64,000 nt of DNA from Blastocladiella emersonii ATCC 22665 (GCA_025594325.1 JANHCV010000010.1:372001-436000), one strand, 5' to 3'; positions 28,652-60,782 are shown, counted from the stretch's first letter. Notes: generated by a model not told the origin, from the letters alone. A program made the numbers and translations.

Positions 28652-28672
28652 ACGCGTTCCGAAATCATGTGA
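28652..28672 (+). promoter_or_regulatory. Bipartite element ACGCGT-N6-ATCATGTGA upstream of the forkhead gene
   Basis: ACGCGT TCCGAA ATCATGTGA, ending 108 bp before ATG 28780. The same element occurs at 36231, 37846, 58606 and 60762. Confidence 0.7.
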
Positions 28673-28779
28673 GCTGCACGTGGGCTTGAGACGGTCGCAT
28701 TTCCGCCTGCCGCTCAGGGCGCAGTGACCGTTCGGCTCGAGTACTCAATGATCTCAGTGCACGTACACGACGTAAACAA

Positions 28780-30760
28780 ATGGAACTTGATGCATTAGAC
28801 TCGGATCACCTTTCTCTTGCTTATTCCGAGGCCCAGTTAGCGCAGGGAGGTGTTTGTGTTGAAGGTCCTGGTTCGCCGCTCTTGCCGGACTGCAACTCTC
28901 CCCCCGCTGGATTCGCTCGGTCTGAATCTCCGCCGGCCGGCTTTTCGCTGGATCCGACACCGTTGAACCTCTCGCGTGCTCCAACTTCGGATCAGACGGA
29001 CTCGGACCCTCTCCCAAACTTAGGTTGCAAACATGCGCAGACTTTCGAAAACTACGACGCGCGAGCCGCTTGCTATGCTCCAAACCCTGCTCCGCCGCTT
29101 CCGTCGTCTACCACGCGGGGCTTTTCGCCAGCAGTGCCTCCGCCGCACATGCTTACACCGCCGTCATCCGCTCTGCCCTATCACTCTGCTGCTTATTTGC
29201 CGCCTACACTTGCGCCGTACTCGTCGGGCGTTTGGCACGCGCCGATTGACGGGCTCCCCGCGTCGTACTCGACCTATGTGGCATCTCGCCTCTCAAGAGC
29301 GTACGCTGGCGCTTTCGCGCCGTTCACTCACACGCCAGCCTTCAACGGCTTCTCGATGTCGGCTCCAGTCGCACCACCGCAATCGCTGCAGCCGCCCTCG
29401 ACTCGGGCTACACTTTCGGATGTGCCTCCGCCGCAGCCCCAAGCGGCTCCTTAGGAGCCGACATCGCTGCCGTCCCTTGGATCACCAAGCGGAGCTGCGC
29501 AGGCCGGCCCTAAGGTTGTCGAGGCCAAGAAACGGCCCCGCGTGACGAAGAAGAAGCTTGAGTCGCGACAAGTTGTTCAGTCGGCTGTTGATCCCACAAC
29601 TGGGGAAACATACACCCGACCGCTCTTTACTTACAGTCAACTGATCTGCCTTGCAATCCATTCGACGCCCGATCGGAAGATGCTGTTGGCGGATATCTAC
29701 GCGTACATTATGGAACGCTTTCCGTTCTATCGCGTTATTGATCGAGTCCCTTGGCAGGTACGGGCAAGAGTTCCCTCCTTCCTCGCTCGTGGTGATGCCA
29801 GACTAATACCAACCTGTCTCTTTTGTCCATGTAGAATGCTGTCCGACACAATCTTTCAATTGGTTCTGGATTCTCGCGGGTCAAGCGCCCAGTGACCATG
29901 GAAAGGACGGGGAAAGGCGACTACTGGACCGCTTCCGAGGACTTTTCGAAGCGCGTCTTCCGCAATTGTCCCGATTACACTTCGCTCGAGACTTTGACTG
30001 CTTCACTTGCAGAGGCCACTGCGTCACCCACTGCCGCGTCGCCCACCGCCGCGCCGCTCACCGCCAAAGCTGCCATCGCCATGGCTCGGCAGCGTGGGCG
30101 CGCGCCGTACAACACAACCGAGCTCATTTGTGCCGCTCTCGCTTCCACGCCTGACCGCAAAATGACCGCTGCTCAAATTCGAATGTGGGCTCAGCGCGAG
30201 TACGAGTTCTATCGCCGCAAGGACAGCTCACGCTTGCAGGTATGTCCGCCCGCGGATTCTTGGCCGCTGGCGCATGCCTCCATGCTAACCGCGCGGCTCT
30301 TCGTGTGTAGGGTGCCATTAGCAACAAACTCAGCCATCACCATAGCTTCACTTGGGTTCAGCGCGACGCAACTGCCGATCGCGACAACAGGTCGCGCGGC
30401 TACCTCTGGACGGCGAGTGATACCTTTATTCGAGAGACGCTCGCCCGCAGAGTCTGGCAAGGCCCAGCCCCGCTGTCGACTGCGACTTCGAACCTGCCAG
30501 CCGCGACGCATGGCGGCGGCAGCGGCGATTCGAATGGTTCCCCTCCGGCGGACTCGGACACCGAATCCGGCTCCGAATCGGATACACTCGTCAAGCTTGT
30601 TGCACGCAAGCGGCGGCGGGTCGATGGCTTGTATTCCGACCAGTCTGGCGACGAAAGCGCGGGCGTGGAAGATCCTGTGGGCTGGGATGGCCGCGAATCG
30701 GCGGCACCGAGCCCCGCCTTGTCAAACTCGGCGGATTCTCCTGTTTCGTCGGATCGATAG
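28780..30760 (+). pseudogene. Tandem double-forkhead (winged-helix) transcription factor gene with one in-frame TAG (pseudogene, or stop removed by splicing or read-through)
   Basis: FH1: RPLFTYSQLICLAIHSTPDRKMLLADIYAYIMERFPFYR..WQ|intron 29758-29834|NAVRHNLS..GKGDYWT. FH2: RAPYNTTELICAALASTPDRKMTAAQI..LQ|intron 30240-30310|GAISNKLS..RGYLWT. Final stop 30758-30760; internal TAG 29452-29454 is in frame with both flanks. Confidence 0.8.
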
Positions 30761-31154
30761 CTGGTTTGAGCATAAATACGATCCTGTTATTGTTACGTTG
30801 GATGCACAGTGATTGAATTGAGAAGCGAGGCGCCGAGCCAGCGTCAATCGACGCGAAGAGTCCAGTTGGCGAGTAAGCACACGACGGACGCGTCGCGATA
30901 TCCCGTTTATGGCGCTCGCGAGGGCGCGCTCGCGTCGCTCGCTCTCTGTTCACAAGCAACTCTCGCAAATGATGGGTGGAACTAACTTAGCGTGGTGGTC
31001 AAAGCTGGATCCCTGGATGATTTTCGCGGTCGAATAGGGCGTTCGTTACCTTTTCCTTTTGCGCGCACGACTCTTTTGAATGTTGTTAACGTAAGCGTCG
31101 ACGCGTAATAATATAATAGGGGTCATGTCGCGTAGAAAACGCGTAATACTCGTC

Positions 31155-32436
31155 TCACAGCGCCAGGACGGCAGGCGTCGACGGATTCTCCTCGATCAGT
31201 TTGTCGCGATCCGCATGCGGCAGGCCCTCGAGATGAAGCTCGACCAGCGATGACGGGATGCAGCCAAGGACAACTCGAGCACCGATCGCTGTTGCAGCCA
31301 CGCTGGAGATATGTAACCGGACCAGGCGCGTGGATGGGAGGACGTGAGCGAGTTTGGCGAGACCTTCGTCACGGAGCGGATTGCCGCTCACGTGCAAGTG
31401 CTCGAGACGCGGAAGGTGGCGGCAGATTGTCTCCATGTCGGCAGAGCGGGTGAGGCAAGATCTCATGCTCAAGATCTTGAGCAAATGCGGGAGCGCCGGC
31501 GCAAGAATGGAGAGCTGCTCGGAATCAAGGGTGCACGCGTCGAGGCAGAGTGACCGCAGGGTTGTGGGAAAATGGGCAGCCAAGCGGCGAGCGGCGTCGA
31601 CGCTGAAGACCGTGTACGTAAGGCCGATTGATTCCAGTGCAGGCGGAAGAAGAGCGAAAATGCGACCGGGGTCGGCTCGCCCAAAATGAGGGCGTTGCAT
31701 TGTCAGGGTTTCAAGGTTGCGCGGAAACACTTCGAGCTGGTCCAAGCCGTTGATTGGCATATCTTCCTCGACCCAGTTGAGGCCTCGCCAGCGACTTGAT
31801 GGTTCGTGAGTCGTAGAGCTTGAGCAATTGGATTGTCGGGAAGATCAAGTTGCACGCGGTCAGGATGAGAGAGGCAATGCGCTGTCGCGGGTGCACTAGG
31901 GCTACTGCAAGCGCACCCGCACCAGTTGCCGTCACTCGATTCGCGGAGACATCCACAGCACTGATTGTACCGGTGGAGATTAAGTCAGTCAGTCGAAAAA
32001 TCAGCGTGTCGCCTTGGTCCCGCGAAGCCATCTCGGCAGCTGAGACAAAGCCCTGCCCAGCGCCAAGAAAATGAACCCGTGCCATAAGGTCCGTGGGGTC
32101 GCGGTCGGCCAAAAGTCCCGAGCGCCGCCACCAGTCAAAGACGTCGTAGTGCTTGACGCGGCTGTTCGAGATCGCGTCAAAGTCAAAGTCGAGCGGCTTG
32201 CCCGACCGCTGACACATCTGCAGCACATTGATGCGGCCCGTCAGGCTCGCCTCGTTCATTGAAATCGACGTGGTGTGGTCGAAGATAACGCGGCGGACCC
32301 GCGGCGAGTCCTTGGCGAGCATGACGCGCGCGTCGCTGAGCATGCGCTCGATGTCGTCAGGATCTTCAAGCCGCACGTCGTGCGCCAAAATCCGATCGAA
32401 AATGTCTGGGACAGCTAGTTGCGCCAAGTTATTCAT
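31155..32436 (-). pseudogene. LRR family-A copy A3, full length except one 2-nt deletion
   Basis: The ORF from ATG 32436 (MNNLAQLAVPDIFDRIL) shifts frame near 31785 (CTG GCG A GGC CTC AAC TGG, versus CTC ACG CTT GGC ATG AAC TGG in A4) into the 31155-31760 LRR ORF. Confidence 0.88.
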
Positions 32437-32722
32437 GGGTTGCATGAGAAGGGTTCGGTCGGTTCGCAGAGGTAGCGATGAAGGCGAGCGCCACTGGTCA
32501 CGATGAGCGCAAACGCGACCCTGAAACGCGACGCGCGCGCCGCCAGCAAACCGACCGTGTAACTTTCGCAACGCTCGCGAGCGCAGCTCTCGTTAAGCAC
32601 CTTAACGAGTGTGACTGGGCCCAAAGTCTGATGTCATGAGCGACATGGGCCGCGTGGCGCAACGCGTCTTGAGCAGGGTGCATCAATCAGAGTGTATTAC
32701 GGGCAAACCGACTGTTCTTTCA

Positions 32723-34009
32723 TCACAGACTCACTCCAAAGCGGACCACCAGCTTCAGCTGGCTCACCACTGCCCGATCAGCAAGCGGTAAATACTTGAG
32801 CTCGAGCTCGGTGAGCGACGGCGGAGCGCAGTCAAGGACAGCGCGAGCACCGATCTTGCTGGCACCAACGGCAGAAAGATACAAGCGAACCAGGACCGTG
32901 GCCGGGAGATACTCGGTAAGCTTGGCGAGGCCCATGTCGCCAAGCGGATTGCCAGACAGGACAAGGATTTCGAGTCGCGGCGGGAGGTGGCGGCAGAGCG
33001 TGTCCATTTCGCCAAGGCGAAGGTGGCAGGACATCAGATTCATAGTCCTGAGCGTGTGCGGGAGCCGCGGCGCGAGAATATCGAGTTTCCCGGCGCCAAG
33101 GTCAGTTTTAACGAGTTGAAGGGACCAAAGGGACGGCGGCAGGTGCGCCGCCAAGCGGCGAGTTGCAGCAACGCTCAACATTGTGCGCGGAAGCTCGAGC
33201 CAGGTGAGAGTGGGTGGAAGGAGTGCAAACACGCGGCCGGGGTCGACTCGCCCAAATTGCATGCCTTCGAGTGAGAGGCGCTGGAGGTTGTGCGGGAACA
33301 AATCGAGCTGATCCAGGCCATCGATCGGCATACCCTCCTCGATCCAGTTCATGCCAAGCGTGAGCGCTTTGATGGTCGGTGATATGTAGAGCTGAAGGGA
33401 CTGGAGCACCGGAAAGGTCAAGTCGCACGCGGCCAGCTGAAGGTAGGTGACCCGTTGGCCAGGGTGCGATAGGGCAGCTTTAAGCGCGTTTGCACCGATC
33501 GCGGTTACTCGATGCTTCGTGACGTTCACAACGGAGATTTTCCCGGCGCATATGTTATCGACCTGACCTAGAATGAGCGCATCGCCTTGGTCCCGCGACG
33601 CCCGTTCGGCGGCTGAGACAGGCCCTCGTCCAACACCAAGAAAATGGACCCGAATCATGGGCTCGGTAAGGTTACGATCGGCAACAAGTCCTGACCGTCG
33701 CCATCAGTTGACGACGCCGTAGTGCTTGACTGGGCTCGTCGCGATCGCATCCCAGTCAAACTCGAGCGACTTGCCTGACTTCGCCCACATCCGGAGCACA
33801 TGGACGTGACCCGCCAGGCTCGCTTCAGTCGTGGAAATCGACGTGACATGGTCAACGAGTGCGCGGTGGACCCGCGGCGAGTCCTTGGCGAGCCTGACGC
33901 GAGCGTAGCTGAGCATGCCCTCAATGTCGTCGGGATCCTCTAACCACACGGCGTGCGCCAGAATCCGATCGAAAATGTCCGGGAGAGATAGTTGCGCAAA
34001 GTTATTCAT
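32723..34009 (-). pseudogene. LRR family-A copy A4, full length except one nonsense codon
   Basis: ATG 34009 is in frame with the 32723-33658 LRR ORF. A single TGA at 33706-33704 stands where A1 and A3 have Trp (KHYGVVN*WRRSG versus KHYDVFDWWRRSG). Confidence 0.9.
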
Positions 34010-34181
34010 GGGTTGCATGAGCGGGCGGTTCGCTCGCTCGCAGAGGACGAAGATCATGAGGCGACGACGAGTTCAACGCGGGCCACCCCCGACGGAGCGC
34101 CTGACGGAGGCGTGCCGCCAGACTTGGCCCCCTGGCGGCTTCTCACCGCTCTCGCTCGCAATGCAAAGCTGATGCAAAACC

Positions 34182-36037
34182 ATGCTTGACAAACTTTATG
34201 TGCCGGCAATCATCGAGCGGATCTTGGTCCACGCCGTGAAGCTTCACGACAAGGACCGGGCCAAGCGCCACCTCACCCCGAACGAGAACGGCCGCGAGCG
34301 CGTGCGAACGCTCATGCAATACGCCCGCGTGATGCCGCGCGCTCTCATTCCCGGCATCGAGCGGGCGATCCTGCTCCACGCACCCTTGCTTTCGCTGGAC
34401 AGGGCGACCGAGGACGGCAAGGTCGCCGTGCTTGCTCAATGGGCCGCTCACGGCCTTCCCCTCAAGTGCTCTTCCGAAGCGCTCGAATCGGCCATCACGG
34501 GGCGCATGGTGGACGTCGTCGAGTGGTGGCGCAACATGGGCGGAATCGACGACGTGGTTCCGGAGCTCGAGGACTGGCTGCTTGAATCGTTCGGACATAG
34601 CGACTACTTCACCGCTGTTCGTGTCGCACTTGGCCTGGATATCATGTCTACGAGGGCCAGCCTGGAGGTATAGCCGAGTTTGTGGTACGTCGTTTCTGAC
34701 CGACACCCACACGTGTTCCGTATATCAAACTAACCCAAACCGGAACCGGGACGCATAAGGTCGCAAGCCGTGCAACGCTATTGATCACGCCGTTGACGAG
34801 CAATACGACGCCATTGCGAACGGCCTCACCGACAAGATTTCCATGACGCACGAGCCCATCTCGATCCACGGCCTCCAGCGTCTCAACGCCGCCATGGCCA
34901 GCCCGTCGCAGAAACTCAAGGAGCTTCGCCTTTGGGGCTGCACCATCGACATTCCGCGACTCACCACACTCCGCGTCCCCGAGTCGGTGGTCAAGGTGAC
35001 CGTCGGCGGCTTTTGGTTGGGCGGCATCGGCCTATCGTCTCTCAAAAAATGCAGCGGGATTCGTTGGCCCTCGCAACTCAAGTCGCTTTCGCTTGCGGAC
35101 GCGAACCTCAACGGATCCACCGCCACTGACTTGTTTTTTTCACCGACTTCCTCCTTCGCTGCACTCGCTGTCGCTTCACAACTGCGGTCTCAACGGCGTA
35201 ACCTTGATCCAAGTTGTCAAAGTGCTTCCACCGACCCTCGAGGCCTTCGACCTGCGCAAGAACCGAATCAACGCTGCCGCGCTTGCAAACGCTGGCGCTT
35301 TGCTTCCTCCGTCGCTCCAGGTTCTTGATCTGAGCAACAACGCGTATCTCTCGGATGGGCGGTCGAATGTGACTTGGACTTTCCCAGCATCGCTCGAGGA
35401 GCTCAACCTGCTTGGCACCAAGCTCGGCACCCTTGGTACGCAAGCCATCGCGACAGCCCTTCCTCGGTCGCTCAAAAAGCTCTTGATGTCGGAAAGCGAC
35501 CTCGACCCAGAGGAGGCCGCAACTATCTTCGCCTCTCTCCCGCCCTCGCTCACCAAGCTCTACATCACCAACTGCCCGATTTACGACAAGGCCGCCGCCG
35601 CGCTGGCCCGCGCGCTCCCCCAAAAGCTCGAGGAGTTTGTCTTCTACTGGTCCAAGCTCACGGCTCTGCAGACGGCTGGGTTTCTGCGCCGCTTGCCGCC
35701 CACGCTGCACACGCTCGACCTTGGCGGGGCCGTGCTTGGTACTTCGGGCACTCGCCTTCTCATTAAGAATATGCCGAAGCGCCTTCAGGTCCTGAAGCTG
35801 CGCTCCGCGGAATTCGACGACGCGTGCGCCGGTTTCCTTGCCCGCAGCCTCCCGCGCACGCTGACGTGGCTCGACCTCCCAATGAACAAGATCACGTCGG
35901 TCGGTGCCCTCTTGATCACGTCCAAGGCGCCGCTGAAGCTGACTCGGCTCTCGTTCTGCGAGAACGGGATCCCGCCGAGTGCTCAGCCAGCGATTCGTGC
36001 CGCCACCCCAGCTACCCTCACCGACCATACTTTCTGA
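34182..36037 (+). pseudogene. LRR family-B copy B1, one intron and a +1 frameshift in a T7 run
   Basis: Exon 34182-34667 (YVPAIIERILVHAV..VVEWWR), probable intron 34668-34767 (weak GTATAG donor, CTAAC branch, AAG acceptor), then LRRs. T7 at 35134-35140 breaks DLFF|HRLPPSL; T6 would give an intact gene. Confidence 0.8.
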
Positions 36038-36230
36038 TCGTTGTTTTGTATTTCATTTTTCCCTGGCTCCAATGGCTCGGAGTTCTTGTTGTTCCAATAT
36101 ATTATGATGATTCGCTTCCACCTAATCATGAATGAGTAATCCCTTACTGGTGCGAGGTCTCGTACAAAGTAGCCAGTGAAAGAGCAAGGTTCTGCATGGG
36201 CATCAGCCAAAACTACATGGAGGCAATTTT

Positions 36231-36251
36231 ACGCGTCGCGTTATCATGTGA
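36231..36251 (+). promoter_or_regulatory. Bipartite element upstream of LRR gene B2
   Basis: ACGCGT CGCGTT ATCATGTGA, ending 132 bp before ATG 36383. Confidence 0.75.
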
Positions 36252-36382
36252 CAGCCACATGATGCCGGGCCTGCTCCCTGCCGCGCGCCCGCGCCGCGAG
36301 CAGCAACTGCGGTGCAGGCTACGTCCTCTTGCTCCCGCTCAGGCACCATCGACGTAAACCTATGAAAAGCTGATGCAACGTC

Positions 36383-37594: not shown

Positions 37595-37845
37595 GCCGAG
37601 TTTGTATTCTAATGAACGCTCCCGGGAACTCGTTTTGCTGTGATAAATTTCTCGCTGTCTTTTCTCCAGTATTTTGTCTCAGGAAGCGGGCACTGGCTCG
37701 AGTTTGGGCCGTGCACGCGGAAGGCACAAGCGCAACGCGCAGCAGAGCGTGAGCCTTTGAGGATTTGAAGAACATGGTCCATGAGGTGCGTGTCAATCGA
37801 GGTGCACTAAACTAAACGCTTACCGAAACGCGCGTAAAGTGGCTC

Positions 37846-37866
37846 ACGCGTCGCGATATCATGTGA
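37846..37866 (+). promoter_or_regulatory. Bipartite element upstream of LRR gene B3
   Basis: ACGCGT CGCGAT ATCATGTGA, ending 109 bp before ATG 37975. Confidence 0.75.
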
Positions 37867-37974
37867 ATTTCACGTGAGGATCAGCCCTGTCGGCCTGCGA
37901 GACGGCCGCGTGGCGCGGCGAGTTTGAGTTTGCTCCCTCGCTCTTTGTACCTCACCTCGCAGAACAAATTACTC

Positions 37975-39737: not shown

Positions 39738-39932
39738 GCAGCACACAGTTCGCGTCGCCCTCACAAACGTCTCCGAGCTCTACGCGAATCGCCTCGCTGT
39801 CAAGTCGATACGATCAATACACTCACATTGATCTTGTTTTTGCATTCATTGACAGGGGGTGATATTACAGTACGCTAGAGAGGGGAACGAACACGAGAGG
39901 GTAAAACGACAGCAACGTAGCGCTCGCCGGGC

Positions 39933-42073: not shown

Positions 42074-43074
42074 GGTGGCGGCGGCGTCGGACGGGCGGCG
42101 AGGGTGCGGGTGGGGATCGTGGAGTCGATGCGTGGTGATGATGTCGTAATCAGGTTCGGCAGCGACGGTGGCGGTACATGGGTTGATGGTTCGGAGGAGA
42201 GCAGGTCGTAGTAGTAGTAGTAGCCGAGAGTCTAGTTGAGCAGACGAGTATACATGGGGGACTCGCACAGCGTCAGCATGACGGCGCGGCGTCGGCGCGG
42301 GCGAAAGAGGAGACGGGTGAGGCGGACCGACTGGTGCAGGACGGCGGCGTGATCGGTCGTGGCGCGGCCGGCGGCGAAAGGTCGGTGGTGGTGCCCGGTC
42401 AGTCGGTCGCGGGGTGGGCGAGTATCACACACGCGGAGGGACTCGGGTGCAGCCGGTCGATGGGGTGCGATCGAGGAGGCAATGGGCCACAGTGACGGGG
42501 GTGTCGGTGCAGCGGCGTCCAGGAGAGCGCAAGGAGTAGTTGTTGCTTGCGTTGCAAGGGGTGGTGACGGGGGGTGGGTATCCGTTACTACGGTTCGGTT
42601 TTCGAAAGAGGGGAGGAGGTTCGGCCGAGGGAGGTGGGTCACCCGCGGCGAGACGAGGCGAGGAGGGAGATATCAGGTGGTGGTGCTCGGGCGGTGATAA
42701 AAAAATAATCGTTCGAGCGAGCGAGCGGGGCAAGGGCCAGACCGAGCCGTCTCTCCCGCCCCGCGGCGGGCCCAGTGAGTCGTCGTTGCGCAGGACCGGA
42801 TCATGGTGTTGCACCAACTTATTATGCGCCAAGAGGGGGACATTGTGCGCCACATGGGAGCGCTTTTCGCGCCCCGCTGGAATGAGCCCACAGCGAAGCA
42901 TCCTCGCGTCTGGCACCGGTCACGTTTCGCGTTTTCGATACAATTTGCGCGGACACGAGCCGTGGTTCACGCAATGTCTCGCACCCGTGGTTTGCGAGCG
43001 AGTTGAGCGGGCGCGACGCGTCGTTCAGCCGCGCGTGCGTGTGGCGCGCGGCCCGCAAACGCGTCTCACGGCGG

Positions 43075-43095
43075 TCACATGATATCGAAACGCGA
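43075..43095 (-). promoter_or_regulatory. Near-perfect bipartite element (TCGCGT-N6-ATCATGTGA) ~1 kb upstream of CFAP210
   Basis: Minus strand TCGCGT TTCGAT ATCATGTGA; one mismatch to the island consensus. Confidence 0.5.
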
Positions 43096-43234
43096 GACGA
43101 AACATCGACGCGTCACGATGACTCGCGCCGAGACAGCTGCAAAATCCAATCAAGTCACATTCTAGCTAGGTCTAGTCTCGTCTAACTCGGCGCACTCTGG
43201 TATTACAAAACCACCACTTCGATCAGCCCAGCCC

Positions 43235-49580: not shown

Positions 49581-50192
49581 GACGGACGTGAGAGGGAGAG
49601 AATATATAGATGGTAGAGGAAGCACCCGTGTTCTCGTGAGCGACGGCCGCTGCGTCGGCCGCTGCGGAGGTCGATGGTCGGCGCGGCGCGGTGCACGCGC
49701 CGGGTGATGTGATTTCGCGCGCGGTCGGGTGGCGGCGGCGTTCCGCCCCCCACACATCGCTCGCCGCCGTCCGCACTCCCTCCTCCCTCCCCTTCCCCCG
49801 CACACACGCACGCACTCGTCGATCCTGCTGCAACGCGCGAGCAGTGCATCGGCGACCACGTAACTCTTGTCTCGCGGCAACCCGGACCGCCACCGTCGAC
49901 GTCGACGTGTCTCGCGCCTTCCCAGCACGCGTGCCGACGACGACTGTTCTTCGGGCACCTGCGGGTTCATTTGCGACGACGACGCGTCTCGTCTCGAAGG
50001 TGCGGCTCACGCGCGCGGTCGCGCCGGCTCGAGTGCCGAGTCGGGGCTCTGTGGCGTTGTTGCGGACGCTGACGACGTCGGCGACGCGCGACGTGTTGGT
50101 TGTATAATAGTCTGCCCTCCCTCTCCTTCATCAACAACGACCTGAGCAGCAGCAGCAACGCCATCGACTAGATCCGACCGACTACCTCCACC

Positions 50193-53100
50193 ATGGTACG
50201 CCCGCCCCCGCCCCATCCGTCGCACCAGCAACCCGCTCACCCACCGCCACCACCAGGACCCGTCCAACGCGGCCCGCATCGCCGAGATCCACCGCAAGCT
50301 GGCCGTCGAGGAGGCCATGCGGTCGGGCGCCGAGGCCATGCGCGCCAAGCTGACGGACCGCAACGCGCTCGCCCAGTGCGAGGCCACGCTCGACGAGTCG
50401 GCCAAGCGCATCGCCTTCCTGCAGGCCCAGCTCGACCGCCTGCACCTCTCGGGGTCCGCGTCCTCGAGCACCCAGTCGCTCGGCGCCCTCGGCGCGCTCC
50501 CCGGCGGCGCTATGCCGTCCGACCAGCAGCATCAACATCTCGACGCGCCGCCCGGAGCGCACGCGGCGAGTAACCTCTCGACCTCGTCGTCGATGCGCGA
50601 CTTCCCCGCCACCATGTCCGCCCCGACGCTCGTGTGCGGGCCCGACGACCACCCGCACCTTTCGTCGCAGGCCTCGGGCACCGCGACCCCGCCCCATTCG
50701 CCTTCCGCGATCCCCGTCGCCGTCGCGGTCCCCGTGCACGGCTCGTCCGAGTCGCTCAACGCGGCCGGCTCCGGGTCGGGCGGCGGCGGGAGCAGCCACC
50801 ACGCGGGCCCGCTCGCCGGCAGTGGCGCGCGGAGCATCCACCCGACCACCTTCGCCGCGGCGTCGGCGGCCGCGGCCGCGGGGGGCTCTTCCGCGTCGAC
50901 CACGTCGACCTCGGGCAGCAGCGGCGGTCTCTTCTCGTACTTCAAGAAATCGATGCGGTCGAAATCCGCGTCGTCGATCCACGGGCTCGCCGACCCGCGC
51001 GGCCCGCTCGCGCAGCAGCTGCCGGGCACTTTGGGGGAGTTGCTCCTGTCGGGCCCGCCGCCCGTCAGCTCGCTCCCGCCCAACGACGACCCCGCGGCAT
51101 CGAACCTCGACCTGTCGCGCGCCGGCGTCGCGCTGTCGACGGCCCAGATCTCCAACAAGATGCGCGACCTGACGTACAAGCTCGAGGTCGCTGCCAAGGG
51201 CGGGCACACGGGCAGTATGCCGGCCGCGGGCAACTCGGCGTCGGCGTCGTCGGTCCGCTCGTGGGCTGCCGCGTTCGGCGGTGGTGGTGGGACGCAGACG
51301 GCGGGTGCGGCCGCGGCGGCGGCTGACGGGCACGCTGCGGCGGCGACGGCGGCGGCAAGTGCGGCGCCCACAGACCCCGCCAGCATCGACCCGGCCGTCC
51401 ACATCGACGCGCTCAAGCGCGCGCTCAACAAGTACTCGGGCCTGTACGTGCCCGACCCGTCGGCCACGCTGTCGGCGGTTGCGGGCGGCACCGGCACCGA
51501 GCCCACGTCCCCCACCGGCGATCTCCCGCCGCCGCCGCCGGGCCTCCCCGGTTTCGCCCCCGCGACGCCGCTCGGCACGCTGACGGGCCCGCCGCCCATG
51601 GTGTCGACGATCCCGCGGCGCGCGCAGCCGAAGCACGCGGGCGAGCTGGCGATCCACCTGGTCGCGGCGCGGGTCCCGCCGTCCGTCAAGAACGCGCTGT
51701 CGCGGTCGCGCGCCGACCACTACATGGCGGTGGTCCAGGTCGACGGCGTCGTTAAGGGCCGGTCGCGCGCGTTCAAGGCGCCCAAGGACAAGTCCGGCAG
51801 CGCCACCGAGATCCCGTTCAACGAGGTGTTCACGGTCGCGCTCGCCGATAAGGCGGCCGAGGTCGAGGTCGTCCTCGTCGAGGCCGATAAACACGGCGTT
51901 GCCAAGATGGTCGATGGGATGCTCTGGTTCCGTCTCGCGGATGTCGTCGCGGCCATCGAGGCCAATGGCGGGACGGGGGCCACCGAGTCGGGCGAGGTGT
52001 CGGGCTGGTTTGACCTCGACCCCGTCGGCGCGGTCCTCGTGCGCGCGCAGTTCACGACGGCGGCGCGGCCGCGCAAACCCTCGCGGCTCGGGCGGCAGGG
52101 CGCGGTGCGCAAGAAGAAGGTCGAGGCGACGCGCAACGGGCACCGGTTCGTGCTCGCGCAGTACGCCAACATCGTCAAGTGCGCGCTGTGCTCCGAGTTC
52201 ATCGGGGTCTCGTCGTGCTATGCGTGCGAGGCGTGCGCCTTCTCGTGCCACAAGAAGTGTGCGCCGCGCGTCCTCACGCGGTGTTTCGCGGCCAACCCCG
52301 CCGGCGCCACGCCGGGCGAGGAGGACGAGGACGAGGAACCCCTGCCCCACAACATCCCGCACCGGTTCACGGCCCACACTAACCTCAAGGCCAACTGGTG
52401 CTGCCACTGCGGGCACCTCGTCCCGCTCGGCCGCGGCAACGTCAAGTGCGGCGAGTGCGACCTCGTCGCCCACAAGGGCTGCTCCATGCTCGTCCCCAAC
52501 TTCTGCGGCCTGTCCATGAAGCGCGCCAACAAGATGATCCACGAAATCAAGCTCGCCAAGGACATGCGCGCCGCCAACGCCATCCGCATCGCCCAGCGCG
52601 CCCAGCAGATGCAGGAGCACCAGGCCGCCGTCGTCTCGGCCGCGGGCGCTGCCGGCGTGGGTGTCCCCGAGCACGTCGCCGCCGCCGCTACCGCGGATAC
52701 GGCCGCCGGTGACGAGCCGCCCGCGGCGCCCGACGGTCTCCTCCCGCCGCCGCCCACCATGATCCCCGTCGCCGTGCCGTCGGTCGGCAAGGCGCAGGTC
52801 GACGTCGACGGCGCCGCCGCCATCAAGCCCGCGCCGGTCGGCGTCGTGGTCGACCGCCAGGTGCCCGTGGTCGTGGAGCGGCAGGACCTGGCGCCGCCGC
52901 CGGGGGCCATCGGCAAGGGCGTGTCGCTGGACGATTTCGTGTTCCTGGCGGTGCTCGGCAAGGGCAACTTCGGCAAGGTGATGCTCGCCGAGGAGAAGCA
53001 CAGCCGCAAGCTGTACGCGATCAAGGTGCTGAAAAAGGATTTCGTGATCGAGAACGACGAGGTCGAGTCGACGCGGTCCGAGAAGCGCATCTTCCAGGCG

Positions 53101-53928
53101 GCCAACGCGTCGCGGCACCCGTTCCTCATCAACCTGTACGCGACGCTGCAGACCAAGACGCGGCTGTACTTTGTCATGGAGTACGTGTCGGGCGGCGACC
53201 TGATGCTGCACATCCAGCGCGAGCAGTTTTCGGAGCGGCGCGCCAAGTTCTACGCGTGCGAAGTGCTCCTCGCGCTCGAGTTCTTCCACAAGCACCAGAT
53301 CGTGTACCGCGACCTCAAGCTCGACAACATCATGCTGTCGCTCGACGGGCACATCAAGCTCGCCGACTACGGCCTGTGCAAGGAGAACATGGCGTACGGC
53401 GCCACCACCAACACCTTCTGCGGGACCCCCGAGTTCATGGCCCCCGAGATCCTCTTCGAGCAGAACTACGGCCGCGCCGTCGACTGGTGGGCGTTCGGCG
53501 TCCTCGTCTACGAGATGATCTGCGGCCAGTCGCCCTTCCGCGGCGACGACGAGGAGGAGATCTTCGAGGCCATCCTGCACGACGAGGTCCTCTACCCGAT
53601 CACCATGTCCCGCGACGCCGTCGCCCTGTGCCAGGGGCTGCTCACGAAAGACCCGCGCCGCCGCCTCGGCGCAGGGCCCGCCGACGCCGACGAGATCAAG
53701 CGCCACCCGTTCTTCCGCGGCGTCGACTGGGACGCCCTCCTCGCCAAGCGCATCGCCCCGCCCTTCGTCCCGCGCATCACGGGCGCCAAGGACGTGTCCA
53801 ACTTTGACGAGGAGTTCACCCGCGAGCCGCCGGTGCTGACCCCGATCCACACGGTCCTCGACGACGCCGAGCAGCTCGAGTTTGCGGGCTTCTCGTACGT
53901 CGCCGACTGGGTCAACGAGGTGCGCTGA
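50193..53928 (+). CDS. PKC1: Fungal protein kinase C (HR1-C2-C1-C1-kinase), ~1224 aa; first coding exon is only the ATG
   Basis: Exons 50193-50195 and 50257-53928 (GTACGC..CAG intron). Pseudosubstrate RLGRQGAVRKKK, two C1 zinc fingers, VLGKGNFGKVML, YRDLKLDN, TFCGTPEFMAPE, NFDEEFT, FAGFSY. Confidence 0.96.
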
Positions 53929-54132
53929 GGTGCGCGCGGTGGGGGTATTTTGGTTCACTTAGTCTTCCTTTCTGTTTTGCTACCAACTACGATCGATACA
54001 CACGAATATCTTCTACGCAACGTGGTTTCTCTCGCCACGAGTGAGGATCGGCGCGATGCGAGGAGGTGAGAGGCGGCCGTGACGCGAGCGGGGAGGCAGG
54101 GCGGGAAGTTCGGTGCGGCCGCGCGAACGCAG

Positions 54133-54405
54133 CCGTTCGCGGACATGACGTGCCGCCGCGTGGGCCCCGCACACAGCCGACGGCGCTGATGAAGTCCCTG
54201 AGCGCGTCATGATCTCGCCGCCAGAGAACCGTTGCGAGAGATCCCTTCGCGAGGATCGACGCGAAGTGCGGAGATGCGTCACGGCCGTGATGCGAGCAGT
54301 CCGCGGCGACCGCATACGCTACTGTTCGCGGACACGACTCTCAGCGTGGGCCCCGCTGATGCGAGCAGGCACTCGTCGGCGGTGATGAAGTCCCTGACCG
54401 CGCCG
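54133..54405. repeat. Degenerate tandem duplication (~190-200 bp period)
   Basis: Blocks GTTCGCGGACAYGAC, GCGTGGGCCCCGC and GGCGSTGATGAAGTCCCTGASCGCG each occur twice in the same order. Confidence 0.6.
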
Positions 54406-55003
54406 CGAGGCCAGGGTCGAGTTCGTTGCAAGCACTCCCTGGACGATTCTGGTGCAAGAACCCAGGGAGTAGAACGCCTGCGCGCTGCCCAAGGTGCGCG
54501 CCCACGCTGACACTCCTGATCTCGTTGAGTTCTACAGACGACGACTGCAACAGGGTAGCTGTAGCTCGTCGGCCGCGAGTGCTCGCCTGTGAGGACCAAG
54601 TGCGACAGAACGCGCTCCAAGGTCGACGGCCGTGACCGAGCTCGTTGCACGAACTGGTCAACCGGCTGGGCTGGCGCTCGCCATGCTGCTTTCGACCATG
54701 ATCGGTATCCGATGAGCAGCGCGGCGCGCTCGGATCAGATCCGCGTTGCTCGCGTAAGCGGAGAGAAGCCACGCGTGAGACGGAGCGCGAGACGCGTCGC
54801 GATATCGCGTGGATTGGGGAGCCGCAGACACGTGCGTCACAGGAAGCGGCCGGAACAAAACGGCGCCGATCGATTCGCTCGTTCGCCGCGCGCCGTGTGT
54901 TTCACGCGTCTGCCCGCTGCCCGGCGCGCGTATAAAACCTGCCCGCGCCCCCGACGCCCGGTCCCCGCTCCCGCCGTGAGTCTGTATCTCGTCGATCAAC
55001 ACC

Positions 55004-55864
55004 ATGTGTACGCTCATGTTACCACGCATCAACAACTGCCACGGCCACGGGGCTCACGGACGACGACGACGGCGATCATGTAGCGTCCCTCATCCGCAAG
55101 CCCGCCCCCGCCTTCAAGGCCCCCGCCGTCCTGCCCTCTGGCGAGATCAAGGAGGTTACCCTCGCCGACTACAAGGGTACGCTGCCGCTGCGCGTCACGC
55201 TCGACGCGTTGCAGCACCGCCGCTGGTGAGCGACGCGTCGGGCTGCTCTTCCTCGAGGACCCGGGCTCACGCACATCCCGTACCTCGTACCACTAGGCAA
55301 GTGGGTCGTGCTCCTCTTCTACCCCCTCGACTTCACCTTCGTGGTACGCCTCGCTCGCTCGCTCCGTGCTCGCAACGCGGCGCCTGACCGAGCTCCTCGC
55401 TCGTCGACCCCTAGTGCCCCACCGAGCTGATCGCCTTCAGCGAGGCCGTCGAGCAGTTCAAGGCCATCAACGCCGAGGTCCTCGGCGTGTCGTGCGACTC
55501 CGAGTACTCGCATCTCGCCTGGGCCAACACCCCGCGCAAGCAGGGCGGCCTCGGCCCCAACTTCAAGCTCACGCTCGTCGCCGACCGCTCGCGCGAGATG
55601 GCCCGCGCCTACGGCTGCCTCCTCGAGGCTGACGGCCACCCGCTGCGCGGCACCTACATCATCGGCCCCGACGGCGTCGTCCACTCGATCACGGTCAACG
55701 ACACGCCTGTCGGCCGTTCGGTGACCGAAACGAAGCGCATCATCGAGGCTTTCCAGTACGTGGAGAAGTTTGGGGAGGCGTGCCCTGTCAATTTCGTTCC
55801 TGGGGCAGCTACCATCAAGGCCGATCCCAAGGGCGCCAAGGAGTACTTTGAGAAGAACAACTAA
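55004..55864 (+). CDS. TSA1: Typical 2-Cys peroxiredoxin, 4 exons, ~197 aa
   Basis: Exons 55004-55007, 55084-55176, 55297-55343, 55415-55864 give [44 protein letters not shown]. Confidence 0.93.
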
Positions 55865-55996
55865 GTTCGCGGTTTGTCGTCCCTTCCCCATGTTTGGAGC
55901 GCTGATTCGAGCAGAGTAAGAGATCCTCATTTTTCTTGACTGTCTTCTATCTGTGATGATGCCGGAAGAGAGAATTTGCCGTGCCGGGTCAAGGTG

Positions 55997-56177
55997 GCCA
56001 TGGGCATGGCCATGGCCACGCTTAGTTCACCGCGGTCATGCTTTGTTCAGGTCAGTGAAGCTATTAATTAGGACAAATCGACATTTAACTAGGAGCTATA
56101 GTTGTTTAAACTCAAGTATTTGAAGAGCTAAGAACTTGACCGTGGCGGGTGATCGTGGTCACGGCCATGGCCACGGC
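55997..56177. mobile_element. Possible MITE-like element: imperfect ~45-bp inverted ends around an AT-rich core
   Basis: Left GCCATGGGCATGGCCATGGCCACG..CCGCGGTCATG versus reverse-complemented right GCCGTGGCCATGGCCGTGACCACG..CCACGGTCAAG. No target-site duplication found, and the (ATGGCC)n repeat is self-complementary. Confidence 0.35.
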
Positions 56178-56193
56178 ACCCTCGCGACTCCCC

Positions 56194-56254
56194 AGTTGTT
56201 CTTCTCGAAGTACTCCTTCGACTTCTCGGGATCGGGGATGATGGTAGCGTTCCC
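56194..56254 (-). pseudogene. Inverted fragment of a peroxiredoxin C-terminus
   Basis: Minus strand GNATIIPDPEKSKEYFEKNN versus the adjacent gene's GAATIKADPKGAKEYFEKNN (55802-55862); 48/61 nt identical by hand alignment. Confidence 0.85.
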
Positions 56255-56678
56255 ATGACCGGGCGATAAGCAAAATCAGTACCAAAACGCCGAGATGGCG
56301 TCAATACTGATCAATGATGGCCGCGTCGCCTGGCAAATAGAACATGGCAAGATCCGCGCCGTCCGCCACCCCTCGATCGCGTCCTGACAACGAGCCACGC
56401 ATTCTACGTGCAAGGTCTCCTAATTAAATAGAAAGATTGTCACAGGCAGTAATGAAGCCGAACATTTCCGACCCTAACAGGACCCGCGGCGAGGGAGGGA
56501 CGCTACCGATCTGCACACGTAACACGCTCATCCCAATTGTCAAGCTGGCGACGGTGCGAGTGTTTGCCGTCGCGGCAAGCGTCACTCAACTCGAAGCGCA
56601 CTTCGCACCTTCGCACGCCATGTCATTCTTTTTCTCGCTAATGTTGCGTCCTGCGTGTAATCGCGCACACAGGGACGC

Positions 56679-56720
56679 CCGTGGCCATGGCCGCCTGATG
56701 GACCACGGCCATGGCCACGG
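56679..56720. repeat. Perfect 15-bp inverted repeat with 12-nt spacer
   Basis: CCGTGGCCATGGCCG-N12-CGGCCATGGCCACGG; the right arm is identical to 56162-56176. Confidence 0.8.
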
Positions 56721-56839
56721 TGAAGCTTGAGTCACACGGCCGCGCCACTGTGTTCACACCCACTGGCTACGAAAAGTTCAAGGTAATCGTGTATTTCACT
56801 CGCTTCACCTTCGCCGTGACACTGCCTTGTCGATCCTGG

Positions 56840-58477
56840 TTACTCGGGCGCTGACAAAGGCGCCATGATATGGCTGATTTGCTCTGGAGTCTTCCCAACC
56901 CATGTTCTGTTGCCTCGCGACATGGTGATAGACGTGAGGCCCTGCGGCAAGTGGCCGGCCAGGATGCGCGCTCCAACGCTTGTGAACTCATTCGTGGAAG
57001 CGTCCAATCGAATCAAAGATGTTGGAAGCGCTGGCGCGAGGACGACAATCGCTGCATCGTTGAGGTTCGTGGAACCAACCCGCAAGCATTCAAGTCGCGG
57101 GGGCATGTTTTGCGCCAGTAGCTTAGCACCCTCCGATCCCAGGTCGCACCAGGTGAGGTCGAGATGTGTAAGAGTCCGAGGAAGTCGCGGAACCAACTCC
57201 AAGGCGCCCAGACGCGGGATCTTGCTCACGCCGAAGCTCAACAGAGTGAGGTGTTGGGGGAGCTCGCAGGCAAGCTCGCTAGCGGCTTCGTCCGTAACCA
57301 CGCTAAATTGGAGCGTGAGATTGCGTAGTGAAAAGGGCGCATTGCTGAGCGCATTCAAAATTTGAGGAGTCAGCTCGCTTGCTGTAACGTCCAGCGAAAC
57401 AAGGGAGCGCGGAAGCTCAACAAATGGCTCGCGAGCAGAACTGGTGGTAGTGGTTGAGATCTGTTCGGCTCCGGTCCTCGCGCAAGCAGTGATATGGCCA
57501 ATCGATAAGTGTTCGAGCGAGCTCGGAAGTCGCGCGACAGTAGAAGCGAAGCCTTCACTCGTCAAATCGCTGCCCTCTATGTCCAACCGCTGCAGCTGCG
57601 AAGGTAGAAATCGGACAAGCGAACAAAAGTCTCGATCGCTGAGCGAGCAATTCCACAGGGTCAGCGTCCGAAGCGTGTCGGGAAGTTCCCCGAGGAGAAG
57701 ATCAAGTGCACTCGTCAGGTTTCCCGAGGAGAAAGCGAGCGATTCCAGACCAGACGGCCACTGCATGATGGTGAGTGGGACAGACATGAGCACTGGAGAG
57801 AGAGTAAACCAGTGCGCATCGATCTCAGCTTCGCGCAATGACCCTGGAAACCGCATAGCGAGAAATCGAGGAAGATCGATCGTGCAGTATCCGACGGTAA
57901 CCGACCGAAGTGACTGGAAGGGGTGAGCCATGGCAGCGTTGAGCGCATCGACCCCGGCCATCGAAATAGGTTGCTCATCAAGATTGAGTTCAACGAGGGT
58001 ACCGGCAGCAATGTCGGTGCATAGCTCGTTGACGCCCTCGTCCACGGCGAGCAATGGACTTTCGTCGTCATTGTAGGGGTGTACTCCAAGTGCGATGTAG
58101 ACATGTGATGTGACCTCGCGCGCATCCAACCACGGCTTGATTTCGTTGGCATTGAGCGAGCCCGTTGTGCGCCACCATTCGAGGGCCTCGAGACGGCGGG
58201 AAGCGATAGCGAACTCCAAGGAGTCCAGCGAGCAGGTGAGCGGAACACCAAGCGACAACCACTTGTTCAAGATGAACACGTCGCCACGTTCCGTCGCCGC
58301 ATCGAGAGAGAGGTGGTAAGCGTGCATCAAGAGTGCACGCTCGACGCGCGGGGCTAGAGATCGCGGCAGCACCCGCGCACAGTGGAGAAAGCTGGCAGCA
58401 TCCGTGGACTTGATTCGCTCAATCGCATAAACAAGAATCCGCTCGATCACCTCGGGAACATGCATAGCCTGGAACAT
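56840..58477 (-). CDS. F-box-like/ankyrin-like/RNI-type LRR protein B4, intact, intronless, 545 aa
   Basis: HVPEVIERILVYAI..LSLDAATERGDVFILNKW..LEALEWWR, followed by LPxxLxxLxL repeats. Confidence 0.88.
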   Translation of the reverse strand: MFQAMHVPEVIERILVYAIERIKSTDAASFLHCARVLPRSLAPRVERALLMHAYHLSLDAATERGDVFILNKWLSLGVPLTCSLDSLEFAIASRRLEALEWWRTTGSLNANEIKPWLDAREVTSHVYIALGVHPYNDDESPLLAVDEGVNELCTDIAAGTLVELNLDEQPISMAGVDALNAAMAHPFQSLRSVTVGYCTIDLPRFLAMRFPGSLREAEIDAHWFTLSPVLMSVPLTIMQWPSGLESLAFSSGNLTSALDLLLGELPDTLRTLTLWNCSLSDRDFCSLVRFLPSQLQRLDIEGSDLTSEGFASTVARLPSSLEHLSIGHITACARTGAEQISTTTTSSAREPFVELPRSLVSLDVTASELTPQILNALSNAPFSLRNLTLQFSVVTDEAASELACELPQHLTLLSFGVSKIPRLGALELVPRLPRTLTHLDLTWCDLGSEGAKLLAQNMPPRLECLRVGSTNLNDAAIVVLAPALPTSLIRLDASTNEFTSVGARILAGHLPQGLTSITMSRGNRTWVGKTPEQISHIMAPLSAPE

Positions 58478-58605
58478 TTTGCATGGAGTTTACGTTGTGT
58501 TGGCGAACAGGTTTGATTGCTGCTGCGGAGAGGTGAGCAGCGGATGGCGAAGGCGAGCATCGGCAGGCAGCGTGGCGTTCGCGAGGCCCCCGCGTGGCCG
58601 CCGCA

Positions 58606-58626
58606 TCACATGATTGATCGACGCGT
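58606..58626 (-). promoter_or_regulatory. Bipartite element upstream of LRR gene B4
   Basis: Minus strand ACGCGT CGATCA ATCATGTGA, ending 129 bp before ATG 58477. Confidence 0.75.
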
Positions 58627-58971
58627 CTCCGATGCTCACCTTCGCGCGATATGCGGGTGCGCTGCGGATGACACCCTGCCGACGCATTGCGCGTTCAGAT
58701 TTTACAATAGGAAGCGCGGTCCTGCACTGTTGCGGGAAGACATCTTGCGCGTCGTTCACACAAGCGACGTGACGGTTCAATACGAATGTTCACCGCTTCT
58801 CACAGCGATCCGAGTGAGTTCCACCCTTAAGGCAGGATCTCTGAATGTAGGTTAGTGGAGGTTTGCGACGACGAAATTGTATTATGGACGCAGATAGGGA
58901 TATCCGCTTGATAGCGGCGATCGGGCAACGAGTTTGACAGGTTGGACATCAACGAGAACTGAGGCTCGTAA

Positions 58972-60633
58972 TTATTGCACTTGACGCAAGCGCGCAGCCG
59001 CCACTTCAAGCGCGGTTATGCCAACACGCGTTATTTCGTTGCGCTCAACAACAAGGCTCGTGAGAGATCTGGGAAGATGCTTGGCGAGGAAAAAAGCGCC
59101 AGCGTCCGTGATCTTGTTCTTGCACAAGTCTAGGCTGATGAGCGTGCCAGGAAGCGCTGGCGCGAGGGCAATCATGGCCGCGTCGTCGAGATTTGTGACG
59201 TAGAGATACAATTCCTGAAGCCGATGGGGCATGTACAGGGCGAGCATCTTGGCACCCTCGAAGCCAAGATTCGTGGAGGAGAGATCAAGGTAGGAAAGCG
59301 AAGGAGGAAGCCGTGGGATGAGGACCATAGTGCTCGAACGTGTAAGCTTACAGCCGCGGACGTCAAAGCGGGCGAGTTCGCGGGGAAGCACACTGGCAAG
59401 TTCGGCTATCGCGTCATATGGCGCATTCTTGGCCGGATTGCCCCAGATGGTAACGTCCTTGAGTGAAGGTCGAGGGAAGTTGCCAAGAGTGCAAAACAGT
59501 TGGCGTGTCAGCTCGACCCTTGAGACTGAGAGTGAATTGAGATTCATCGGAAGCGGACCCGATCCTTGGGCTTGCACAGGGTGGACCGGACTAGCTAAGG
59601 CAGCTGTCGGCGTGATTTCTGCCCCAGCGCGTAAGCCGCGTCGGTTTGCCACGCGACTAAACGAGATCCTTTTGAGCGAGGCTGGGAGAAGTGGTACAAT
59701 TGCAACAAAGCCAGCGCTGGTCACATCATTTTCGTCGAGTTCGAGCTCCAGAAGACACGTGGGCAGGGCTCGCACAAGTTTGTAAACGTCATGGTCGGTA
59801 AGGGCGCAGTTATTGACAGTGAGTGACTCGAGCATCGTGGGAAAGCCTTGTAAGAGGTATGTGACAGCAGCTGGTAACACAGCGGAGGTAAGCATGAGCG
59901 ATTTGAGGCCCGGTGGCCAGGCCATGGGCATTAGATGGGACTGTTGCGCCGGGAGGCTACCCAGCCAGTACGTCTCGAAGGTTGCGGAGTGCAGGGACGG
60001 TGGAAGCCGAGGGGCAAGCAAACGAGCAAGGTCAATCGTGGAGGCGTCGAACCGAATTGAGCGCAAAGCCTGTGCAGGGCTTGCCATGGCAGCGTTGAGC
60101 GCTTCGATTCCAGCCATCGAGACACGCATGCCCATCATTTCGACCTCCACGGTGCTACCATCGGCAATTTTAGCGCATAACTCGGCAATCCCCACGTCGA
60201 CAGCGAGACCGTCGGAAGCTAAACCTGAAGGCACGCCGAGGGTGACATAGGCATCGGTATGGTCCTCGTCGCGGCCCTCTAGCCACAGCTTGAGCTCGTC
60301 GACGTCAAGTGAGCCCGTCGCGCGCCACCACTCGAGAGTTTCGAGATGTCGCTCATCGACTGCAGCTGCTAGGGCTTCAAAGGAGCATTTGAGCGGGACT
60401 CCTAGTGCTGCCCATTTGTTGAGCACGACCAGGTCGCCACGCGCGGTCGCTGCGTCAAGAGAGAGATGTGCGGCGTGCTGTAGAAGTGCTCCCTCGACTC
60501 GCCGGGAAGCAGCCCGCAGCATCACTCGCGCATACTGCAAGAGCCCGGCAGCGTCGGCCGGGTCGCCGTGTTGACGGATGGCATAAACAAGAACTCGCTC
60601 ACACAAGTGAGGTAGATGCATGGCATGGATCAT
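58972..60633 (-). CDS. F-box-like/ankyrin-like/RNI-type LRR protein B5, intact, intronless, 553 aa
   Basis: HLPHLCERVLVYAI..LSLDAATARGDLVVLNKW..LETLEWWR plus LRRs; collinear with B4. Confidence 0.88.
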   Translation of the reverse strand: MIHAMHLPHLCERVLVYAIRQHGDPADAAGLLQYARVMLRAASRRVEGALLQHAAHLSLDAATARGDLVVLNKWAALGVPLKCSFEALAAAVDERHLETLEWWRATGSLDVDELKLWLEGRDEDHTDAYVTLGVPSGLASDGLAVDVGIAELCAKIADGSTVEVEMMGMRVSMAGIEALNAAMASPAQALRSIRFDASTIDLARLLAPRLPPSLHSATFETYWLGSLPAQQSHLMPMAWPPGLKSLMLTSAVLPAAVTYLLQGFPTMLESLTVNNCALTDHDVYKLVRALPTCLLELELDENDVTSAGFVAIVPLLPASLKRISFSRVANRRGLRAGAEITPTAALASPVHPVQAQGSGPLPMNLNSLSVSRVELTRQLFCTLGNFPRPSLKDVTIWGNPAKNAPYDAIAELASVLPRELARFDVRGCKLTRSSTMVLIPRLPPSLSYLDLSSTNLGFEGAKMLALYMPHRLQELYLYVTNLDDAAMIALAPALPGTLISLDLCKNKITDAGAFFLAKHLPRSLTSLVVERNEITRVGITALEVAAARLRQVQ

Positions 60634-60761
60634 TTTGCATTGAGTTTAGGGTGCGTCCACTTGCGGTATTCTGGGAAGTGCGAAGAGTGGCGGTCTGTCG
60701 GAGGACGGTGACTGACGGGGCGGCGAAAGCGAACGCCACAAACGTGGCTGTCGCCCTTGCA

Positions 60762-60782
60762 TCACATGATAGATCGACGCGT
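60762..60782 (-). promoter_or_regulatory. Bipartite element upstream of LRR gene B5
   Basis: Minus strand ACGCGT CGATCT ATCATGTGA, ending 129 bp before ATG 60633, the same distance as in B4. Confidence 0.75.

Follow-up and report, generated by a model that had tools for sequence, protein, structure and literature searches.

We describe a bipartite sequence element, ACGCGT-N6-ATCATGTGA, in a stretch of 64,000 nucleotides (nt) of the genome of Blastocladiella emersonii ATCC 22665 (GCA_025594325.1 JANHCV010000010.1:372001-436000), hereafter called the window. Comparison of its copies shows a 24-nt element that is evidently under purifying selection, with invariant spacing between its two halves, a fixed orientation, and a constrained position before gene starts. 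As far as sequence comparison can tell, it forms part of the 5' module in a superfamily of leucine-rich repeat (LRR)/ankyrin-like genes specific to B. emersonii. We consider it likely that the motif is a selected proximal promoter element of this module, which also serves a few other genes. The element is a new motif of a familiar kind, the fixed-spacing promoter composite.

Exact matches to the motif occur five times in the window and never in 100 dinucleotide shuffles. All five are on the sense strand, with the first ATG of a long open reading frame (ORF) 107-131 nt past the last motif base. The copy at 28652-28672 (+, spacer TCCGAA) lies 107 nt before the ATG of a double-forkhead ORF (28780), and the four others precede LRR genes: 36231-36251 (+, spacer CGCGTT) is 131 nt before the ATG of B2 (36383), 37846-37866 (+, CGCGAT) 108 nt before that of B3 (37975), 58606-58626 (-, CGATCA) 128 nt before that of B4 (58477), and 60762-60782 (-, CGATCT) 128 nt before that of B5 (60633). 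When up to two mismatches were allowed, the only addition was a one-mismatch copy, TCGCGT-TTCGAT-ATCATGTGA, at 43075-43095 (-), in a GC-rich intergenic region rich in ACGCGT and GCGAGAC words; no copy with two mismatches was found in the window. An earlier note on this DNA had reported the five exact copies, and the pattern scan and the ORF starts show its coordinates, strands, 6-nt spacer, and ATG distances to be correct; the one-mismatch copy that it listed was recovered by our mismatch scan.

The two halves differ in how much they say on their own. ACGCGT occurs 63 times in the 64-kb window, so the hexamer alone carries little information. ATCATGTGA occurs six times in the window, each time within one of the six motif sites, and a scan of spacers from 0 to 30 linked it to ACGCGT only at 6. 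The looser form ACGCGT-N8-CAYRTG is found five times, where 0.1 would be expected. The earlier note had described the spacer as fixed in length and varying in sequence. The length holds, since only N6 was observed, but the sequence is not free: the spacer starts with CG in four of the five exact copies and ends with A or T. The trinucleotide GAG stands before ACGCGT in three of the five, and a second E-box follows 4 nt past the motif at 28677-28682 (+, CACGTG), 36256-36261 (CACATG), and 37871-37876 (CACGTG), as well as in one copy outside the window (L005:18723). A relaxed pattern retrieved two further sites in the window. ACGCGT-CGCGAT-ATCGCGTGG at 54792-54812 (+) is in a peroxiredoxin promoter in the GC-rich part of the window, and ACGCGC-CGCGCA-ATCGCGTGA at 13844-13864 (+), which follows GCGAG in GC-rich DNA between genes, is the weakest of the copies considered below.

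We then extended the analysis to eight further loci (173 kb, seven contigs of GCA_025594325.1), which were fetched through paralogs of B5 and give 237 kb when pooled with the window; the fetched locus L004 is the window itself and was excluded from the pooled counts. These loci hold 10 further copies or close variants, for a pooled set of 18. Three are exact (L003:2943, +; L003:19440, -; L005:18723, -) and four have one mismatch (L002:9848, L002:12196, L007:7445 with ATCACGTGA, and L007:16126 with ACGCGC, all +). The remaining three, at L008:67, L008:7826, and L008:9870, depart from the motif solely in the central dinucleotide of the second half (ATCGCGTGA or ATCCCGTGA). The consensus of the 18 copies is g.GAG ACGCGT CG..(a/t)(a/t) ATC(A/G/C)(T/C)GTGA, outside of which there is no conservation. 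GAG precedes the first half in 15/18 copies, and the first half is ACGCGT in 14/18, the others reading TCGCGT, ATGCGT, and, twice, ACGCGC. All variation in the second half falls on the central dinucleotide (AT in 12 copies, GC in four, AC in one, CC in one), which points to ATC and GTG(A) as the invariant contacts. Accordingly, 13/18 copies contain CATGTG or CACGTG, and the five others, including the copy of gene P0011 at its family-typical position, have CGCGTG or CCCGTG, which do not fit CANNTG. Decay of CpG dinucleotides (from CGCGTG to CACGTG to CATGTG) could connect these variants. Two more genes of the family, at L008:2270-2300 and 4770-4800, carry a decayed form, GACGCGA-CTGGAT-ATCACGTCT-N4-CAC(A/G)TG, which retains the spacing and the second E-box and has lost GTGA.

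The preference for a 6-nt spacer, which the earlier note had proposed, is borne out by the pooled sequence. The pattern ACGCGT-Nn-ATCNNGTGA is found 12 times at N6 and never at the 15 other spacings scanned (N0-5 and N7-15). A stricter pattern gave 11 matches and none in 200 shuffles. That no spacing variant occurs speaks for readers that touch each other directly, or for a single complex.

The position of the motif relative to genes is similarly constrained. For 10/18 copies, an ORF of 150 amino acids or more starts at an ATG 91-132 nt downstream in the sense direction, and for none does one start there in the antisense direction; random positions have such an ORF in 8% of cases (P ~3e-7). 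Three more copies are followed by shorter first ORFs at +103 to +131: those of B2, of the annotated start of P0011, and L003:19440. In total, 13/18 copies have the start of either a long ORF or a gene's leading ORF 91-132 nt downstream. The bearers within the superfamily are the LRR relatives B2-B7, P0011, and two unannotated ORFs (L008:195-1487 and L008:7965-8975), and also L007:16238-17632, an ankyrin (Ank_4) protein weakly similar to L008:7965-8975.

The motif has persisted while the sequence around it has been randomised. The proteins of the B paralogs are 42-56% identical, and within identical residues the third-position identity at four-fold synonymous sites is 0.16-0.40, for 0.28 expected from composition. 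The coding 5' ends align strongly, while the 300 nt 5' of the motif and the ~115 nt from motif to ATG score at shuffle level for almost all pairs. In the multiple alignment the motif is the sole long run of invariant columns. Over the pooled copies, 272 flank comparisons (150 nt upstream and 74 nt downstream) gave a mean z of 0.4, with one pair above z 4, and revealed no similarity past ~24 nt around the motif. The saturation of synonymous sites, together with unalignable flanks, argues that the motif is held by purifying selection. The earlier note was right that the flanks have diverged, as almost all pairs align no better than shuffles, and the conservation of the motif far exceeds what ancestry by itself would leave.

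An origin by descent without function has nevertheless to be weighed. Most bearers are paralogs of one superfamily, and the 5' module of the forkhead gene also appears to derive from the family. The motif could then be an inherited remnant, the slowest-decaying part of a duplicated promoter, perhaps refreshed by gene conversion. However, 15 bases are kept in five copies and 14 of the 15 in several more, and neutral survival of this kind is not credible when the synonymous sites and the flanks are randomised. Spacers and flanks differ among the copies, and gene conversion would have made both uniform. A functionless remnant would also leave unexplained a 23-nt identical block in the promoter of the unrelated peroxiredoxin gene. 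We regard this explanation as improbable. We also see very little chance that the motif is a piece of a dispersed repeat or a transposon end, for instance the terminal repeat of a small mobile element, sitting in low-GC islands and unrelated to gene control. The earlier note had raised the case of copies lying within a longer repeat, and the flank comparisons show that the motif is not the tip of one. Copies do cluster where GC content is lower (0.56-0.62) and unannotated or broken genes are numerous, a Harbinger-type Myb_DNA-bind_3 gene adjoins L007:7445, and an inverted repeat adjoins L003:2943. Yet the orientation and the distance to the start codon are constant, the motif is also present in GC-rich core promoters, and the genes are not flanked by paired inverted copies or target duplications.

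Some observations weigh against the reading as a promoter element under selection. The loci were chosen for their LRR paralogs, which makes the sample biased, and the copies are not independent since many are paralogs, so that relatedness inflates the positional statistics. For four copies (43075-43095, L003:2943, L005:18723, and L007:7445), the usual distance leads to no convincing gene. The first of these lies between the stop of a bZIP gene (43235) and an annotated gene of 604 amino acids whose ATG is ~1 kb downstream, and its target is uncertain. Some of the bearers may be recent pseudogenes: the forkhead gene is interrupted once, as assembled, by an in-frame TAG at 29452-29454, and B2 and B3 are relatives with interrupted ORFs, by either introns or lesions. 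An exact look-up of the B4 and B5 proteins gave no record of them as annotated genes. Finally, the variable centre of the second half (AT, AC, GC, CC) fits a strict E-box reader poorly, even if 13/18 copies fit.

The copy at the forkhead gene deserves separate consideration. This gene (28780-30812, +) consists of ORFs encoding two forkhead domains, the first of which becomes continuous (..PWQ|NAVRHNLS..) upon removal of a 77-nt GT..AG intron at 29758-29834. The earlier note held that shared ancestry alone does not account for a motif at this unrelated gene. We reach a different conclusion, as the whole 5' module matches the layout of the LRR family at the same offsets. The region shares with the family GAG before the motif and, like B2 and B3, the second E-box 4 nt after it. 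Moreover, the 10-mer CGACGTAAAC lies at 28768-28777 (+), 2 nt before the ATG and 95 nt past the motif, which is the offset typical of the family. It is identical to the 10-mer of B2 (36350-36359) and found also before B4 (58488-58497, -). We estimate at ~1e-3 the chance that a 30-nt window would hold CGACGTAAAC with no more than one mismatch. The start of the gene (ATGGAA...ATGCA...CTCGGA) also aligns with that of B3 at an equal distance from the motif. The forkhead ORF has probably acquired, or was duplicated with, a promoter and leader of the family type within an island of gene birth and death. We keep this at probable because an unrelated FtsJ gene (L006:13372) also carries the start-proximal block CAACGTAAAC; for the same reason, the GTAAAC sequence within this block was dropped as proof that the forkhead 5' region descends from the family.

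The best evidence for use of the element outside the LRR family comes from the peroxiredoxin gene, whose copy (54792) shares 23 consecutive identical bases with that of P0011 (L008:9870), an identity that cannot be due to chance. In this promoter the motif ends 118 nt before TATAAAA (54931-54937), and the first ATG is 73 nt further. A GTGAGT...TAG interval past the TATA box (54978-55083) resembles an intron of the 5' leader. Bearers outside the family are the forkhead gene, the peroxiredoxin gene, an unannotated multi-frame ORF set at L003:16937-19316, and the four copies lacking a clear target. The earlier note had proposed a regulon confined to the island, and the variant in the peroxiredoxin promoter speaks against an island-only regulon. 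That proposal is too narrow: four or more other contigs hold copies or close variants, as do GC-rich core promoters within the window itself (54792 and 13844).

Between the motif and the start codon the layout is recurrent. A pyrimidine-rich tract on the sense strand occupies the region 40-100 nt after the motif start and is followed, in eight genes, by a GTAAAC-type block that starts 93-112 nt after the motif end and precedes the ATG by 2-3 nt. This sequence is part of CAACGTAAAC, which stands 2-3 nt before the first ATG of many genes of the LRR family and of the FtsJ gene; besides the window positions 28768-28777, 36350-36359, and 58488-58497 (-), it is found at L002:12311, L008:177, 2400, 4895, and 9988, L009:9970, and L006:13372. 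The block could act near the start as part of the core promoter or of the leader. The GTAAAC(A) at its centre is also the consensus site of forkhead factors, and the copy at the forkhead gene itself reads GTAAACA. The tract and the block, both downstream of the motif, suggest that transcription starts after it. The layout would fit an upstream promoter element placed ~70-150 nt before a transcription start whose position we deduce from these features.

If transcription instead started upstream, the motif would be part of the RNA leader, where the AUG of ATCATGTGA and the UGA that immediately follows it would make a minimal upstream ORF throttling translation. ATGTGA is present in 11/18 copies, and the family also keeps an out-of-frame upstream ATG beside the main one, in the sequence ATGCAAAATG of B4, B5, and B7. 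However, the sequence found at this position in paralogous copies is ATCGCGTGA, ATCACGTGA, or ATCCCGTGA, none of which has an ATG, and B6 reads ATGTGG, which has no stop. The ACGCGT half and the rigid spacing would remain unexplained, and the pyrimidine tract and GTAAAC block suggest a later start. We give this explanation hardly any credence. The sequence ATGCAAAATG is located at 58475-58484 (-) in B4, 60631-60640 (-) in B5, and L002:12324-12333 in B7, with B6 reading ATGCAACATG. In B4, B5, and B7 the upstream ATG is 7 nt before the main one and in another frame, opening an ORF of 13-21 codons that overlaps the main start, and this arrangement is conserved despite saturated divergence.

Each half of the element resembles a known binding site. 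E-box sites of the type TCACGTGA / RTCACRTG are those of Cbf1-type basic helix-loop-helix (bHLH) zippers, the class of Cbf1, USF, TFE/MITF, and SREBP. ATCAYGTGA matches RTCACRTG save for a C-to-T change in its commonest form, and as a further likeness several copies have the second CACGTG or CACATG 4 nt on. It differs from an E-box in that 5/18 copies lack the CA needed by E-box readers, the invariant bases being ATC..GTG(A). The first half is the hexamer of the MluI cell-cycle box, the site of MBF (Mbp1/Res-Swi6/Cdc10, with KilA-N/APSES domains) in yeasts (PMC4862756). Here, however, the conserved word extends to GAG-ACGCGT-CG, a single spacing and orientation tie it to a second site, and it stands before LRR, forkhead, and peroxiredoxin genes rather than known G1/S genes. 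As candidate readers we suggest, speculatively, a KilA-N protein of the MBF type or one of the CG-1 type for the CGCG half, and for the TCAYGTGA half a bHLH zipper of the Cbf1/USF/TFE type.

A single factor might also read both halves. CG-1 domains have been reported to bind CGCG and CGTG cores, with the consensus sequences VCGCGB and MCGTGT (PMC4890006). A dimer of a CG-1 (CAMTA-type) or similar protein could therefore occupy the CGCG and CGTG cores, the likeness to an E-box being coincidental. Variant copies hold such cores in both halves, and the variants that are not E-boxes (ATCGCGTGA and ATCCCGTGA), as well as ATCACGTGA, all retain CGTG. The commonest form, ATCATGTGA, has TGTG instead, and we consider a single reader of this type unlikely.

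As a composite, the element has well-studied counterparts. In the yeast Mcm1-Fkh2 and Cbf1-Met4-Met31/32 elements and in the animal Sox-Oct elements, fixed spacing and orientation reflect contact between the bound proteins. The motif likewise joins two different half-sites whose spacing and relative orientation do not vary (12/12 strict copies at N6). Our literature search found no description of a pairing of ACGCGT and an E-box with rigid spacing, and nothing relevant on the motif or on any Blastocladiella promoter motif.

Taken as a promoter element, the motif would work as follows. The short sites (G)ACGCGT(C) and (A)TCAYGTGA, each nearly palindromic, exactly 6 nt apart and in one orientation, would be read by one complex or by two directly contacting dimers, which would activate or gate transcription from the downstream start. 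We infer this action on transcription initiation from the position of the motif, ~100 nt upstream of the CAACGTAAAC block and 91-132 nt before the start codon, with the pyrimidine-rich tract between. The motif would have travelled with the 5' module of the superfamily through many duplications, retained by purifying selection as its surroundings randomised, and close variants would also serve at least one unrelated core gene, the peroxiredoxin. To our knowledge, almost nothing has been described of promoter logic in zoosporic, early-branching fungi. The motif offers a testable cis-element with a single spacing, a single orientation, and a fixed position relative to the start, which survived a divergence that erased the neighbouring sequence. 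It also provides a handle for finding the transcription factors of a large, fast-turning-over gene family, many of whose members the public assembly's annotation lacks, and might serve to design defined promoters for a fungus with few genetic tools.

We tentatively raise a broader, and rather doubtful, idea, namely that the genome uses a general grammar of rigid modules of ACGCGT and an E-box-like site (ACGCGT-N6-ATCRYGTGA and ACGCGT-TGCGCCACT-CACRTGAC, both often with GCGAGAC). Read by a dedicated factor pair or complex, they might switch hundreds of mostly lineage-specific genes of lower-GC islands together, for example at one stage between zoospore and sporangium. If so, these genes would make up a large regulon of a kind that no fungus has been described to have; otherwise, the motif would be an ordinary family-specific promoter motif. 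The second rigid composite, ACGCGT-TGCGCCACT-CACRTGAC, is conserved over ~25 nt, spacer included, with unalignable flanks. It is found at L001:14306 (-), L003:4215 (+), L005:9553 (+), L007:18880 (+), and L009:13879 (+; TCCGCC), and a decayed copy lies ~190 nt before the LRR gene P0010 (L007).

Turning to the superfamily itself, the copies of the window are in two lower-GC stretches (0.56-0.61) of a genome with a GC of 0.65-0.75. B4 (56840-58477, 545 residues) and B5 (58972-60633, 553 residues) are intact tandem LRR_6 genes on the minus strand with 46% protein identity. B4, B5, B6, and B7 (L002:12331-14019) are all intact ORFs of 545-603 residues. In the public assembly's annotation, the forkhead gene, B2, B3, and B7 have no gene model, and B6 has one of only 313 residues. 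Pfam searches of the N-terminal 150 residues of four family members gave no F-box or ankyrin domain, even at an E-value of 5, and we thus refrain from calling them F-box proteins; only language-model features suggest an ankyrin-like fold. All matches to the N-terminus that we looked up, from word-based and full HMMER searches, came from this strain. Family members without the motif have other arrangements of ACGCGT, E-box, and GCGAGAC words, as do genes in L001, or none of these words, as in a GC-rich pair in L006. Tandem LRR genes in L001, 29-31% identical to B5, carry ACGCGT-N10-CACGTG at 9862-9883 and 11976-11997, ~140-160 nt before the ATG.

A few local features accompany these loci. Around the one-mismatch copy, right after the bZIP stop, the interval 43016-43113 (-) contains four ACGCGT and a dense cluster of GAGAC/GCGAGAC words, and looks like a small internal duplication (ACGCGTCGAT .. 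TCGCGTTTCGAT). ARAGORN did not confirm a transfer RNA-like stretch that lies downstream of L005:18723. Around the start codon, L009:9970 (+) and L009:16544 (-) share 46 identical nt (CCACGTAAACttcATG...) in inverted orientation; we read this pair as a putative recent inverted duplication of an LRR gene. Lastly, L003 contains a ~125-nt inverted repeat (3171-3294 and 4067-4180, with 53-nt cores that are 98% and 79% complementary) around ~770 nt, with an exact copy of the motif 208 nt away on the left side and the second motif type 35 nt away on the right.

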